DNA from: Schmidtea nova
Taxonomy: Eukaryota
Direction of reading: 5' to 3'
DNA length: 64,000 nucleotides
Assembly (NCBI GenBank): GCA_044892505.1
Contig: CM097883.1
Location: 265,422,001-265,486,000 of the forward strand
Shown: in pieces, positions 4,659-41,241 of the stretch
Position numbering within the stretch: position 1 is the first letter of the stretch
How the letters are laid out: every line of letters starts with the position of its first letter
Program-made: the position numbers and the translations under genes
The notes under the pieces: generated by a model
What the model saw: the letters and a program-made list of their open reading frames with translations, nothing else
What the model was told of the DNA's origin: nothing
Database searches by the model: none

Positions 4659-4900
4659 TTAAAATCTGAAATATAAAATATATTTAAAACAAAATAATAA
4701 CAAATAAAAAACCGATTTCTAATGCAGATCCTTTGATAAAATAATGCCCAGTTCTTAAAATTATCTTTGTGAATTACTTGACTGAGAGTTGTGCATAGCT
4801 GATACCGCAAATTATTGTACATTTTGTGAGTACAGGATACAGGACATTGCGAAATTACCAATAAATGTAATACTAACACGAATAATGAATTTTTCAACAT
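4659..4900 (-). CDS. Secreted Cys-x22-Cys RxRF peptide precursor, paralog 1 (NPY/NPF-like architecture). Exons 4900-4713 and 4665-4659, 64 aa
   Basis: Hydrophobic signal MLKNSLFVLVLHLLVISQ; core YQLC-x22-CIRNR|F*; 47-bp GT..TTTCAG intron (4712-4666) splits the Arg codon CG|A; TATATAAA 42 nt upstream; AATAAA at 4563-4558; two paralogs in the window with the same structure. Confidence 0.8.
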
Positions 4901-4942
4901 TTTGCTTTTTGTTCAATGGTTAATTTTCACAATTATTATCAA

Positions 4943-4950
4943 TTTATATA
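4943..4950 (-). promoter_or_regulatory. TATA box of peptide paralog 1
   Basis: TATATAAA on the minus strand 42 nt before the ATG; equivalent boxes precede the other two paralogs. Confidence 0.6.
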
Positions 4951-5589
4951 CAATTTGGATTCCTCTTAACATTTAAATCATGTACTTGACACAGTGACAT
5001 CAGAATTTTATGAATGAAATTTTTTACAATCATTTACTATTGAATCATCATAACAAATTAATCTGTTCTAATTGATAGTGGAAAAGTTTGATTTATATTT
5101 AATAAGTATACTTGAAATCAAATTTGAAACTAATGAATAATTTTCAAAAATAGTAGAAATGGAATAATTTTAATAATATTCGGAATATTAATGCTATATT
5201 GTTCAAACTACTCCGTGTTTCACTGAAACGTATCACCTATAATAATCAGTAAGCTTATACTATAGAAAAATACACACCTACATGTGCATTATTCATTTCT
5301 GTTTTAATCAATCGTCTCATTTATTATGTCGTAGAAAATGATAGAAAAAAACAATCACACACAAACACAAAACATTGAAAAAAACAGATGTAAACTTTCA
5401 AATGCGTAAATTGTTTCATTCTATAATCTCACACAAAATTTTAATCGTCAGAAACATTGAAAATTAAAATAGCCGATAAAATTTTTTAAATGAATCTGAG
5501 GAATCTACCACGAGTTTTCGTGAAAATGATGAAATATAATCGTAAGTAATATAATTTAAGTTCTAATAAATTTTTATTTTCACAGAATT

Positions 5590-5670
5590 TCAGAAAATAT
5601 AGCCCTTTTCTTAACCCAATTGAAAGTGTATATAGAAAAATCAAATGGAGTTTACGGAAAACTATCTCAC
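5590..5670 (+). pseudogene. Short IS630/Tc1-type transposase C-terminal fragment
   Basis: Translates KYSPFLNPIESVYRKIKWSLRK, matching the YSPxLNPIE motif. Confidence 0.5.
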
Positions 5671-5699
5671 TGTTGGTTGTGTTGTTGTTCGATGACAGA

Positions 5700-6340
5700 A
5701 AGTGGAGTACGATTGAAATAAATGAATTTTGTGTAGAGATGCTATGGGATTCAGGACCTTCAATCAGTGTGATGAGTGAGAAATGTTGGAAATTAATTGG
5801 CAGCCCAACATTATGGAAAACAGAATACAGTTGAGTGGAGTATTTTCAAAAGAAGACGAAAAACCTCTCGGAAGCGTTAAAATCGTTGCAAAATGGAACA
5901 ACAAATCTCGAGAATTGAATGTTATTATTGTCAGAAAAATTCATCAAGATTTTTTAGGTGTAGACACCATGAGAATATTTGGTATGGAGATTAAAGAAGT
6001 CAATAATATAGATGCATCGTTAGTTACCCAGAGATTTACAGATTCTGATAGGTTAGAGTTTGCGTTATCGACGCTCAAGATGTACAAGAATTCGAAGTTG
6101 GGTACTTTAATATCTAAGTTTAGCAACATTTTTATGGCATCCAGATTTTACTTAGGTCATCCAAAAGTAATAACACATGAAATAACGACTTCGGGTCCTC
6201 CAATTTTGCAAAATCCAAGACAACCTATGCATTTAAAAGTAAAAATTGAAGAGTTAATACAGAATTTATTAGAAGCTGGAGTTGTGAGAAAATGTCAGAG
6301 TTCGTGGAACAGACCATTAGTAATAGTCGGAAAACTATAA
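5700..6340 (+). mobile_element. Ty3/Gypsy pol fragment (aspartic protease plus start of RT), frameshifted
   Basis: EMLWDSGPSISVM retropepsin motif near 5740, then HEITTSGPPI...EELIQNLLEAGVVRKCQSSWNRPLVIV. Confidence 0.85.
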
Positions 6341-7689
6341 AGTAAATACATAAAGTAAGTGCGCACACAGACGCGACAGTACAAACAAAAATGGACTTAC
6401 AACCTGAGCCATGATTATCCACTGACTATTAGCCATTTTTATGTTTTTGATGTAACCGGGTTGTTGTGAGGATAATTGACATTGTCAAGTATTTTTTTGC
6501 TTCATTAAAGCTTTGTATTTTAGTTATTTATTTTCAACATTGCGATAAATTGTCATCATTCACTGTTACACAGCAAGGAAGCATAATCATCACAAAAATC
6601 AAAAGGCATCATATAATATTAAACATCAACATACTTCACCAACAATATTTAAATGTTCCATGCAAAGTTAAATTGGCATCCATTTCATCAAATAAATGAA
6701 GGGTCACAAGTTATAAAAGAACGATGAAATGGATAAAATACCTTCTATCAATAACCCTTGAACACAAACGTGATATTCGATTAATTATAGTTCTGTAAAC
6801 AGTGCTCACCTTTTGCAAATTTCCACCAATTTGTTAAAGTACCAGCATTGCTTAGCGATTGATAAAACATAGTTTTAAATGATCTATGCGGTTACTAGAG
6901 ACAGCAAGAATTAAAATCCACGAAAAATTCGACAATTGCATTCATGTATTTTATTTAGAACTCATCGCAATTTAGATTTATTTTAAAATTTAAATATGAA
7001 TTTGATGAAAAATCAAAAATAATTTTATCAACTTAGTTTACGTGAAATATGCCGAGTTATTGATGTTTAAAATCAATCGTGGTGTCTGATGACAAATCAT
7101 AAAAATAATAGTCATTTTGGACAAAATTCGAGTTTCAGATTGAAGAGTAGATATTATTGGGCGGAAACTGAACTACTTTGGTTTGGAAGCGAATGCAAAC
7201 ATAAAATGCAGTGACAATACAAGAAGTATACTCAAATATCGGAGGAAAACATCAAATAAACAAAAGTAATTAATTAACACAGGTAAACATTAATTAAAAC
7301 AAAAATAAAAATGTAAATTGAACAAATTGCAAGAAGTAAATACGAGAAAAACACAAACAAAACAATTCAATAAAAAAATTGTTAAAGAATTAAATAAATA
7401 TAAAAATTCAAAAATTTTATAAATACTTTTCTTAATTTTAAATGTAAAAAATATAAAATTATATTGTTAAAATTAAAATTAAAATCAAAAATATTAAAAT
7501 TTGTGACAAATATAAAATTTTGGTAAAAACAAAATTTATTAAAGTAATAGATAAATTTTGATACATAAAAAAAAATTTATTTTAGTAAAAATAAAATATT
7601 TAACTTTTAAATAAATTAAATTAAACAAAATGAAAATTATAGAGCAGTTTGTTTTACTGCATCAGTTAAATTAAATGTGTTGAAAATGG

Positions 7690-38952: not shown

Positions 38953-39546
38953 ATGAACTCAGACTCTCATCAACAGAAAGAAATCGATAAGTTATGGAGA
39001 ATCAGACGGACACAGGATAAAGAGTTAGCCCAAGTGAAGGCCCAGTTATCCAAAGCAGAAGCCCAATTGGCGTATCTTCGCAAGAGTTGGTTTACTTCTG
39101 CGCGGATGAAAGACCAGATAAGCCGGACGAAAAGGGCGCAGAGAACTGCAGGAGACTACAAGCTGGAGTGGGAGGCAACAAAGATTGAGTTGAGGAAATG
39201 CCTCCACTCCGTGACCATGTCCTATATCGAAAGGGAGTTAAAGTCACAGATCCTACCAGTGACATATCAAAGCTGAATCTCCGAACAAAAACCTACCTGT
39301 TCGATCGGTACAGATGTCGAAGGGTTAGCAGAAGACAAAACCAGTAACGCACAACAGGCTACAAATGATGCCCTTCCGAGTAGTGCGCATTTAAAGCGAA
39401 AACGAAATGGACAAAAGCATAGAAGACAAAAGAAGTTTTTCGCGCAACGATTCCAGGCTCAAGTCGATCACTTATCAAGTTTAACAGAACTTGAATTGTT
39501 ATCTGAAATCTTCCCACCAGAAGGAAATTTCACAAAATTGTTGTAA
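38953..39546 (+). pseudogene. Orphan 197-codon coiled-coil/basic frame with one internal TGA (39274-39276)
   Basis: Heptad segment KELAQVKAQLSKAEAQLAYLRK; frame continues past the TGA to KRKRNGQKHRRQKK...FTKLL*. Confidence 0.4.
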
Positions 39547-40000
39547 CTAATCAAACGTCTACTAATTATACTGAGATCTCTGTTGTTATTTACAAATTTT
39601 CATTAATTAAAATGTAATTAAACAATATATAGTAAATTGTAACAATCACATTTTTAGTAAAACTAAATAATAAATCCGTAATATATAGCAAATAAATTAG
39701 AGAATTTGTAAACAAAGCGTAAGTCCTCCTAACGGCAGCATGAACCCGCGAACATAAATGGGGATTAGTTCTAGCAATAGAGCTCACCTGCCCATCATTG
39801 TTCAATCACCGTGCACATCACCAACTTGGTTATCGAGGGAAATAATCAAGGGCGCTCGAGTGAGACTGTATAATTATTTTTGTATGATCATGGACGGGGC
39901 ATCCCTGATACACTTTTAGAAATTTTGATCTAACCCCTCCATGAACCCAGCAATATATAAATATATTTAACTTTATAATTATAATTCAATAATACTCTGC

Positions 40001-40364
40001 NNNNNNNNNNNNNNNNNNNNNNNNNNNNNNNNNNNNNNNNNNNNNNNNNNNNNNNNNNNNNNNNNNNNNNNNNNNNNNNNNNNNNNNNNNNNNNNNNNNN
40101 NNNNNNNNNNNNNNNNNNNNNNNNNNNNNNNNNNNNNNNNNNNNNNNNNNNNNNNNNNNNNNNNNNNNNNNNNNNNNNNNNNNNNNNNNNNNNNNNNNNN
40201 NNNNNNNNNNNNNNNNNNNNNNNNNNNNNNNNNNNNNNNNNNNNNNNNNNNNNNNNNNNNNNNNNNNNNNNNNNNNNNNNNNNNNNNNNNNNNNNNNNNN
40301 NNNNNNNNNNNNNNNNNNNNNNNNNNNNNNNNNNNNNNNNNNNNNNNNNNNNNNNNNNNNNNNN
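40001..40364. other. Assembly gap (N); further gaps at 50172-50516, 50652-50960 and 56641-56806
   Basis: Runs of N. Confidence 1.
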
Positions 40365-40402
40365 GTTATTAAGTATTGAAAACCTGTTACAAGTTTTATT
40401 AA

Positions 40403-40762
40403 CCCTTTCAGGACGGGCGTACTATATATAGTAACTCAAATATCTTGAGAACGGATTAACAATTTTCTTTTATTTAGGAATCGTTTGAAAGATAATTAAA
40501 AGATCAACATTTTGATATATAGCATGACCTACTTTGAAAAAATTAAAATATTTTGATATTTTTTCTTATTGTAAAATCACATCCTGTTCAAAAAAATCAA
40601 TAAATTGAGAAGTTTTTTCGATCAAGATTTGAATGTAATGATTGTGATGTTGGGTTGTGTGTTGTTGATTGTTTTGAAATTTATCATACAAAAATAAACT
40701 TTTGAATAAAAAACACTTATTTTTTTAAAAACTTTCTTTTAAAAAATCCCGCCCTTAAAGGG
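40403..40762 (+). mobile_element. piggyBac-derived MITE retaining the Cys-rich C-terminal domain
   Basis: TTAA|CCCTTTCAGGACGGG ... CCCGCCCTTAAAGGG|TTTAA (13/15); [22 protein letters not shown] at about 40625-40690. Confidence 0.8.
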
Positions 40763-40975
40763 TTTAAAGATAATTTGCGGCTTAATGATGCCTATTCACT
40801 CTAATACGAAACTTAGCTGATGTGGTTGCGAATTTCGAATTTTAATTAAAATTAATAAGTAAATATAAATTGATATATTTCAACAAAAACAATATAAATT
40901 GAGGATAAATACATCGATAAAATAATTTCAAAATAATGCAAAAACAGCCGAGATGGTTCCATATTTAAGATCAAA

Positions 40976-41241
40976 TCATATCCCATATCTACCATAAAAA
41001 CGATTAATTAAAATTGTGAGATCATAAATGAAATTTACCTTGTTCGGACGCACCTTAAAGTGAAATATTCTCGTAAATTTTCGTTGTCAACAGAGTTGAT
41101 CAATTGGACTAAAACTTTACAAAGTTCGTAAATGTCGTTTGTTTCCGAAAATGTCTTAGGGAGCGAATATTTCCTTGGTGCCGAGTGCACTCCACAGTAC
41201 ACAAAAAATAAAACAAACAATATAAAAATATAATTTTTCAT
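40976..41241 (-). CDS. Secreted Cys-x22-Cys RxRY peptide precursor, paralog 3. Exons 41241-41039 and 40988-40976, 71 aa
   Basis: Signal MKNYIFILFVLFFVYCGVHS; core YELC-x22-CVRTR|YGI*; 50-bp GTAAAT..GGTAG intron splits Arg AG|A; TATATAAA 39 nt upstream. Confidence 0.84.

Follow-up and report, generated by a model that had tools for sequence, protein, structure and literature searches.

Can the position of a single intron assign a gene to the family of neuropeptides Y and F (NPY/NPF) when the sequence of its peptide does not? This question is raised by a stretch of 64,000 nucleotides (nt) from the genome of Schmidtea nova (NCBI GenBank assembly GCA_044892505.1, contig CM097883.1, positions 265,422,001 to 265,486,000 of the forward strand; hereafter the window), in which an initial annotation had pointed out three short open reading frames, here called g1, g2 and g3, as paralogous genes for secreted peptides with the NPY/NPF-type intron. 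In NPY/NPF genes, this intron interrupts the codon of the Arg in the terminal RF/RY, falling after base 2 and before base 3 (PMC7314547; PMC2953531), a criterion credited to Mair et al. 2000 as that work is cited in PMC7314547. The Arg-codon intron is present in 10 of the 11 planarian npy genes (PMC2953531), it is treated in the literature as diagnostic of NPY/NPF (PMC2953531; PMC7314547), and workers in the field rely on it as a marker when they place divergent peptides in this family. The genes described here form a family that carries the intron marker but without the NPY/NPF profile, the amidation signal or the predicted fold.

Judged from their sequences, g1, g2, g3 and a fourth member located on another chromosome, g4, are a real, old, locally expanded, protein-coding family. 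The best explanation as a whole, to which we give slightly less than an even chance, is that these are selected secreted-peptide genes derived from a duplicated NPY/NPF-type gene and encoding stapled-hairpin signalling ligands. Either outcome would be informative: the family would reveal the extent to which a neuropeptide gene can change, or it would reveal that the marker can arise convergently, and both outcomes would calibrate the weight that the intron marker can bear.

A family of four short peptide genes

All three open reading frames of the initial annotation were recovered in place, and each has the TATA box that had been claimed for it, 36-50 nt before the ATG; the stop codon of each is followed by a poly(A) signal at a distance of 40-128 nt. 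The genes form a cluster spanning 37 kb on chromosome 2. Their models, with splice junctions predicted from the sequence logic described below, are the following:

4900..4713, (-) strand: g1 exon 1, coding part; signal-like N-terminus, spacer and core through the CG of the last Arg codon
4712..4666, (-) strand: g1 intron, 47 nt, GT..AG, phase 2; weak donor (gttttt), good acceptor (ttttatatttcag)
4665..4659, (-) strand: g1 micro-exon, coding part; A (completing CGA, Arg), TTT (Phe), TAA stop
4944..4950, (-) strand: g1 TATA box, TATATAA, which precedes the ATG by 50 nt
4558..4563, (-) strand: g1 AATAAA poly(A) signal, with an additional ATTAAA at 4617-4612
14170..14354, (+) strand: g2 exon 1, coding part; the last letters are the AG of the final Arg codon
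14355..14397, (+) strand: g2 intron, 43 nt, gtaatg..tttatttttatttccag, phase 2
14398..14410, (+) strand: g2 micro-exon, coding part; G (completing AGG, Arg), Phe, Gly, Tyr, TAG stop
14134..14140, (+) strand: g2 TATA box, TATAAAT, which precedes the ATG by 36 nt
14456..14461, (+) strand: g2 AATAAA poly(A) signal, 46 nt past the stop
41241..41039, (-) strand: g3 exon 1, coding part; the last letters are the AG of the final Arg codon
41038..40989, (-) strand: g3 intron, 50 nt, gtaaat..tttttatggtag, phase 2
40988..40976, (-) strand: g3 micro-exon, coding part; A (completing AGA, Arg), Tyr, Gly, Ile, TGA stop
41282..41288, (-) strand: g3 TATA box, TATATAA, which precedes the ATG by 47 nt
40846..40841, (-) strand: g3 poly(A) signal, ATTAAA, at 128 nt from the stop codon; an assembly gap follows after a further 477 nt

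The spliced products are 64 residues long and end in CIRNRF for g1, 65 residues and CVVSRFGY for g2, and 71 residues and CVRTRYGI for g3. Two-exon genes of 64-71 residues with a terminal coding exon of 7-13 nt tend to escape gene callers. None of the three is interrupted by an assembly gap; the nearest to g3 (40001-40364) lies 612 nt downstream of its stop codon, past its ATTAAA. Other assembly gaps in the window (50172-50516, 50652-50959 and 56641-56806) are all distant from the three genes.

The family shares a core of 32 residues, Y-x-[LIV]-C-x22-C-[VIL]-x-x-R-[FY], which aligns without gaps across g1-g4 and is separated from the hydrophobic N-terminus of the g1-g3 precursors by a variable spacer. 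In g1-g3, exon 1 carries 31 of these residues, and the micro-exon contributes the last base of the Arg codon, the Phe or Tyr, up to two further residues and the stop codon. The Tyr, both Cys and the Arg are invariant, and a heptad-like set of hydrophobic columns is also kept. As the initial annotation had claimed, g1-g3 are paralogous and have exactly 22 residues between the two Cys. With g4 included, pairwise Smith-Waterman comparisons of the post-signal parts gave z scores of 6.9-10.9 in all six pairs, and the real scores were reached by none of 2000 shuffles. In the 64-kb window, a six-frame search for the motif as a regular expression matched g1, g2 and g3 only. The fourth member was identified (E = 5e-4) when the 1.25 Gb genome (schNov1; 283 contigs, 1,251,382,582 bases) was searched in six frames with a profile built from these three:

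Chromosome 1, G000:C1:473978046-473978252 (L004:1498-1704), (-) strand: g4, fourth paralog, profile match

This gene is intronless and encodes 69 residues ending in CLKSRFH-stop, with a signal-like start and the Y-x-x-C-x22-C spacing of g1-g3. The sequence TATAAATA is found about 70 nt upstream of it, and neither a poly(A) tract nor a target-site duplication was seen at the locus. Repeating the genome search with the four-member profile returned no members beyond g1-g4. The family consists of two sister pairs: g1 and g4, which have a CGA Arg codon and no Gly, and g2 and g3, which have an AGR Arg codon and Gly; pairwise scores likewise place g1 as the closest relative of g4. At the nucleotide level, no similarity was detectable among the four loci, either in coding or in flanking DNA.

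The divergence of the four genes was estimated over the 31-codon core with the Nei-Gojobori method. Across all six pairs, the proportion of synonymous differences (pS) reached 0.74-1.03, which is saturated, against 0.41-0.54 for nonsynonymous differences (pN). A formal ratio of nonsynonymous to synonymous substitution rates (dN/dS) was not computable among these paralogs because dS is saturated. The saturation of synonymous sites implies that the duplicates are old. All four frames are open over 64-71 codons in DNA of 28% GC, where about 8% of random codons (approximately 1 in 12) are stops. Since these old duplicates have kept open frames together with the Tyr, Cys, Arg and hydrophobic columns, the pattern indicates purifying selection on a protein.

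The Arg-codon intron and its counterparts in npy genes

In g1-g3, the predicted GT-AG intron follows base 2 of the last Arg codon (CG/A, AG/G and AG/A, respectively; the slash marks the junction). The introns of 47, 43 and 50 nt and the last coding exons of 7-13 nt agree with the 43-50 base-pair phase-2 introns and tiny last exons that had been proposed, and the position appears to match that of NPY/NPF genes exactly, including the canonical npy genes of S. nova itself. Several features of the sequence support these junctions. The first AG located at least 30 nt past the donor yields Arg followed by Phe or Tyr in three of three genes (R-F-stop, R-F-G-Y-stop and R-Y-G-I-stop), and in g3 this acceptor is the sole AG between 30 and 160 nt downstream of the donor. 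The Phe or Tyr obtained after splicing is the residue that also follows Arg in g1 and g4. In addition, two of the three micro-exons place a Gly after the aromatic residue, and Gly codons are rare at 28% GC. As a rough estimate, the joint chance of restoring Arg-[FY](-Gly) at the first AG would be below 1e-4. When left unspliced, g2 and g3 terminate at the Arg because their gtaa donor supplies a TAA stop. Their donors (gtaatg and gtaaat) resemble the donors of canonical S. nova npy genes. Read-through of the g1 donor would produce R-F and then 24 further residues, mostly hydrophobic.

The fourth gene has no intron at the NPY/NPF Arg-codon position. Its CGA-TTT stands exactly where g1 has CG-intron-A-TTT, and it reads as the precise loss of an intron from a spliced, g1-like ancestor. 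This suggests that the g4 intron was lost precisely or that g4 is a retrocopy, and its layout would constitute indirect evidence that a junction of the g1 type was used in the past.

A genome search with PF00159 identified nine canonical npy-type loci in S. nova (L022-L030). The junction was read in seven of the nine, and all seven split the Arg codon of R-P-R (or R-Q-R) after base 2. The npy-1 gene of S. nova has an intron of 53 nt and its protein is 98% identical to NPY-1 of S. mediterranea. One further locus deserves a separate description:

L027:1501-1692 and downstream (G000:C1:44403666 region), (-) strand: L027, canonical NPY-type gene ending ..LLGRQR/FGK-stop

This gene combines the donor cg/gtaagg (cg/gt as in g1) with an intron of 54 nt and a last exon of three codons, F-G-K-stop. 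By its gene structure as read from the DNA, L027 comes closer to g2 and g3 than any other npy gene of S. nova. At another locus, L028 (G000:C2:314894296 region), we observed a canonical npy-type exon ending in ..YGRPR with an unusual donor, ag/gtcagt; no acceptor giving [FY]-G-basic was found within the 1.5-kb flank.

Predicted peptide and proposed origin

The peptides look secreted, in agreement with the hydrophobic N-termini that had been noted for g1-g3. The N-terminal 10-residue windows of g1-g4 have Kyte-Doolittle means of 3.0-3.6, and cleavage sites of the (-3,-1) type would leave exactly two Cys per mature peptide. Arg immediately precedes the core Tyr in three of the four members, and monobasic cleavage at that residue would release a peptide of 32 residues with Tyr at its N-terminus and Phe at its C-terminus. 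The helical hairpin anticipated by the initial annotation was also predicted by AlphaFold, at a predicted local distance difference test score (pLDDT) of about 80 and on the basis of the four-sequence alignment. With this alignment, the model contains helices at 37-50 and 54-65 with a core pLDDT of 82-85; for the core alone, helices were predicted at 2-14 and 18-30 with a mean pLDDT of 79. The two helices span approximately 13 residues each and are joined by a turn of three residues. The core model superposes over all 32 residues on known antiparallel alpha-hairpins with a root-mean-square deviation (rmsd) of about 1 Å. The Cys are 11 and 12 residues away from the centre of the turn and should therefore face each other, such that the C-x22-C pair probably closes the hairpin as one disulfide. 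The hydrophobic core columns that are conserved (3, 4, 7, 10, 11 and 19, 22, 23, 27, 28) follow an i, i+3/4, i+7 spacing on both helices, while exposed positions vary; in the model, these columns would form the faces between the helices. The net charge of the core ranges from +1 to +6.

We then searched for relatives of the family in sequence and structure databases. Profile and structure searches of these databases used the exon-1 translations, and spliced forms were used in local comparisons. The exact spliced and unspliced products are absent from a collection of 15 billion proteins, and a word-based homology search with the four-sequence alignment found no match in a set of 5.8 billion proteins. 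An exhaustive HMMER profile search of 1.84 billion representatives returned a single match, P0001 (342 residues). This candidate was rejected as a homolog: its open reading frame runs along tandem repeat units of about 61 residues, with four chance matches on a short N/S-rich, aromatic stretch. As a control of database content, the one deposited prohormone tested, S. mediterranea NPY-1, was present. The best score of a feature search of the ESM Atlas (0.76) corresponds to noise, and fold searches (PDB, Atlas, VIA-wide) yielded generic helical hairpins only, with no NPY/PP fold and no saposin. Finally, neither the table of 51 prohormones in Collins et al. 2010 (PMC2953531) nor any searchable full text contains the motif strings of the family. 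Within the reach of these searches, the family is undescribed, and g1-g4 add candidate secreted signals to a clade used as a model of regeneration.

How could such genes have arisen? We propose that the starting point was a duplicated NPY/NPF-type prohormone gene. Its descendants would have kept the diagnostic intron as well as a precursor that carries one peptide at its C-terminus and finishes in R-[FY](-Gly), while the NPY-type sequence would have been replaced by a disulfide-stapled hairpin and the Gly-plus-basic amidation signal would have decayed. After signal cleavage, the core would fold as an antiparallel helix-turn-helix with its conserved hydrophobic faces packed together; one disulfide (C-x22-C) would shut the open end and leave the basic tail [VIL]-x-x-R-[FY]. 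The products would then serve as signalling ligands outside the cell, with a constant scaffold and exposed residues that diverge. Descent from NPY/NPF would account most simply for a precursor of this layout that has both the intron and an R-[FY](-Gly) end, and we consider it about evenly balanced against convergence. The more specific proposal that g1-g4 are a planarian-restricted branch of NPY/NPF, rebuilt as a non-amidated hairpin with one disulfide and probably acting through another receptor or mode, is put forward tentatively and appears somewhat less likely to be right than wrong.

Several observations weigh against this scenario. None of the four proteins was matched by PF00159 at E<=10, whereas the canonical exon 1 sequences scored 26.4 and 42.9 bits, and g1-g4 are absent from the genome-wide PF00159 matches. 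Compared with hhalign to the alignment of canonical S. nova NPY sequences, the family gave a probability of 13% when the whole of exon 1 was used and of 8% with the tails of 32 residues. The scores of an NPY hidden Markov model (HMM) relative to 300 shuffles were marginal for g2 (2/300) and g3 (19/300) and null for g1 and g4. The C-terminal ends are also heterogeneous: g1 ends in F-stop, g2 in F-G-Y-stop, g3 in Y-G-I-stop and g4 in F-H-stop, whereas canonical npy genes have FGKR... or FGK-stop. A Gly followed by a basic residue or a stop is found in none of the four members; two of the four have the Gly, followed by Tyr or Ile, and the Ile codon of g3 (ATA) is one change away from Lys (AAA). 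Classical amidation of these peptides is consequently unlikely as judged from their encoded ends, and NPY-type receptors require a C-terminal amide. The RxR[FY] end is limited to g1 (RNRF) and g3 (RTRY); with VSRF in g2 and KSRF in g4, it is R-[FY] that is invariant. The intron position could be convergent, since an AG/G Arg codon is a natural proto-splice site. The donor of g1 (cg/gttttt) is weak, and this gene encodes R-F whether it is spliced or not. Eight sequencing runs from one 2024 study, of a kind that is not recorded, contain the stretches plus intron and flanks, and therefore behave as DNA. The proposed disulfide is deduced from the positions of the two Cys relative to the turn of the model. 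Lastly, no ortholog or homolog was found in the sets of 5.8 billion and 1.84 billion proteins. The claim of an NPY/NPF offshoot is thus supported by the position of the intron but not by sequence: neither PF00159, nor hhalign, nor the HMM scores against shuffles support it, and NPY/NPF membership by sequence is not demonstrated.

It is quite possible, though in our estimate less likely than not, that g1-g4 are a real secreted family that does not derive from NPY/NPF, with a convergent intron and R-[FY] end. The genes would then be lineage-specific effectors, such as antimicrobial, mucus, pheromone or toxin-like hairpins of gland cells, and not neuropeptides. Besides the lack of significant sequence or profile similarity to NPY/NPF, the four genes have no conserved amidation or dibasic site, and their cationic cores and amphipathic helices fit such a role. 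Their surface residues diverge fast on a fixed Cys/hydrophobic scaffold, a pattern typical of effector families, and AG/GT at an AGR Arg codon is a consensus exon end at which an intron could arise independently. What convergence leaves to chance is an intron in the penultimate codon and in the NPY phase (about 1 in 200 positions and phases) in a lineage that has around ten npy paralogs built alike. Two of the three micro-exons have a Gly behind the aromatic residue despite the rarity of Gly codons, which points instead to an ancestor that ended in R-[FY]-Gly. The canonical L027 likewise has a last exon of three codons.

It is improbable, in comparison, that the four genes are relics or are unexpressed, i.e., decaying copies of an old peptide family that remain open by chance and have no present function. 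The DNA-like behavior of the eight sequencing runs, the lack of database protein matches, the weak donor of g1, the mixture of C-terminal ends (stop, GY, GI and H) and the position of the genes among transposon fragments are all compatible with decay. Decay does not readily explain why none of the four frames, each of 64-71 codons, has acquired a stop although change at synonymous sites and in the flanks has reached saturation, nor why conservation extends to the Cys spacing, the hydrophobic heptad pattern, the Tyr, the Arg and the aromatic residue beyond the intron, with TATA boxes and poly(A) signals in place.

The surroundings of g1-g3 are rich in piggyBac-like, Tc1/mariner and pogo fragments, and the window contains the following:

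1997-3176, (+) strand: piggyBac-like DDE_Tnp_1_7, split into two frames
43389-43844, (-) strand: second piggyBac-like fragment
11231-12175, (-) strand: Tc1/mariner DDE_3
43992-44363, (-) strand: mariner Transposase_1
34272-34808, (-) strand: pogo HTH_Tnp_Tc5
57450-58304, (+) strand: weak DUF7041 match

Such a setting would be expected if the open reading frames were pieces of a multicopy transposon, a possibility that the initial annotation had itself raised, or if they belonged as exons to some longer gene, saposin-like or otherwise. At the DNA level, each locus is present as a single copy in the genome of 1.25 Gb, where further matches are partial, short and AT-rich, and the genome contains four copies at the protein level. 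The loci are not parts of repeats, and a transposon-borne open reading frame was rejected as they are unique in DNA and have no near-identical copies in the genome. Each gene moreover has its own ATG, signal-like start, TATA box, stop codon 2-4 codons past the acceptor and poly(A) signal, and its peptide has two Cys and not six, with no saposin in fold searches. This explanation is thus largely refuted, and we consider it very improbable.

Comparison with known peptide systems

The initial annotation had also noted a resemblance to half a saposin domain, which was not upheld. Saposins have six Cys, three disulfides and four to five helices over about 80 residues, whereas the present family has two Cys and a core of 32 residues; Cys-flanked amphipathic helices are all that the two have in common. 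With two Cys per mature peptide, and no saposin in fold searches or Pfam, the saposin link was rejected in favor of generic alpha-hairpins.

The predicted structure is more similar to disulfide-stapled alpha-helical hairpins, which consist of two short antiparallel helices connected by an inter-helix disulfide, as predicted here. The core model superposes on the p8MTCP1 hairpin (PDB 1ei0) with a Z score of 4.3 and an rmsd of 1.8 Å over 32 residues, a fold match that is generic. Plant alpha-hairpinins and toxins of the kappa-hefutoxin type are further disulfide-stapled helical hairpins. These stapled hairpins have two disulfides, formed by C-x3-C or C-x9-C pairs, compared to one in g1-g4, and they show no sequence relation to the family.

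The closest parallels in gene structure are the planarian npy genes (Smed-npy-1 to -11, Collins et al. 2010, PMC2953531; PF00159 Hormone_3) together with their orthologs in S. nova (loci L022-L029). Like g1-g4, these genes encode a small precursor with a signal peptide and one peptide near the C-terminus. They have the Arg-codon intron, which in some members is a mini-intron of approximately 50 nt (53 nt in npy-1 and 54 nt in L027), and the F-G-K-stop micro-exon of L027 is matched by F-G-Y-stop in g2 and Y-G-I-stop in g3. A weak echo of NPY/NPF is also visible in g3 as L-x-E-Y-F-x-[IL]. The peptides themselves differ in several ways. In contrast to NPY/NPF, the G-R-P-R motif is missing from g1-g4, and one additional residue stands between the helix and the RxR position. 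Canonical NPY/NPF peptides lack a Cys pair, whereas g1-g4 have two invariant Cys 22 residues apart. Instead of a polyproline arm followed by one long C-terminal helix, the family is predicted to form a helix-turn-helix, and g3 is the only member with Pro residues in its spacer.

A precedent for relying on gene structure is FLP-27 of Caenorhabditis elegans, which was placed in the NPY/NPF type largely on this basis (PMC7314547). FLP-27 is a linear amidated peptide similar to NPF, whereas the g1-g4 family lacks an amidation signal and carries a Cys pair.

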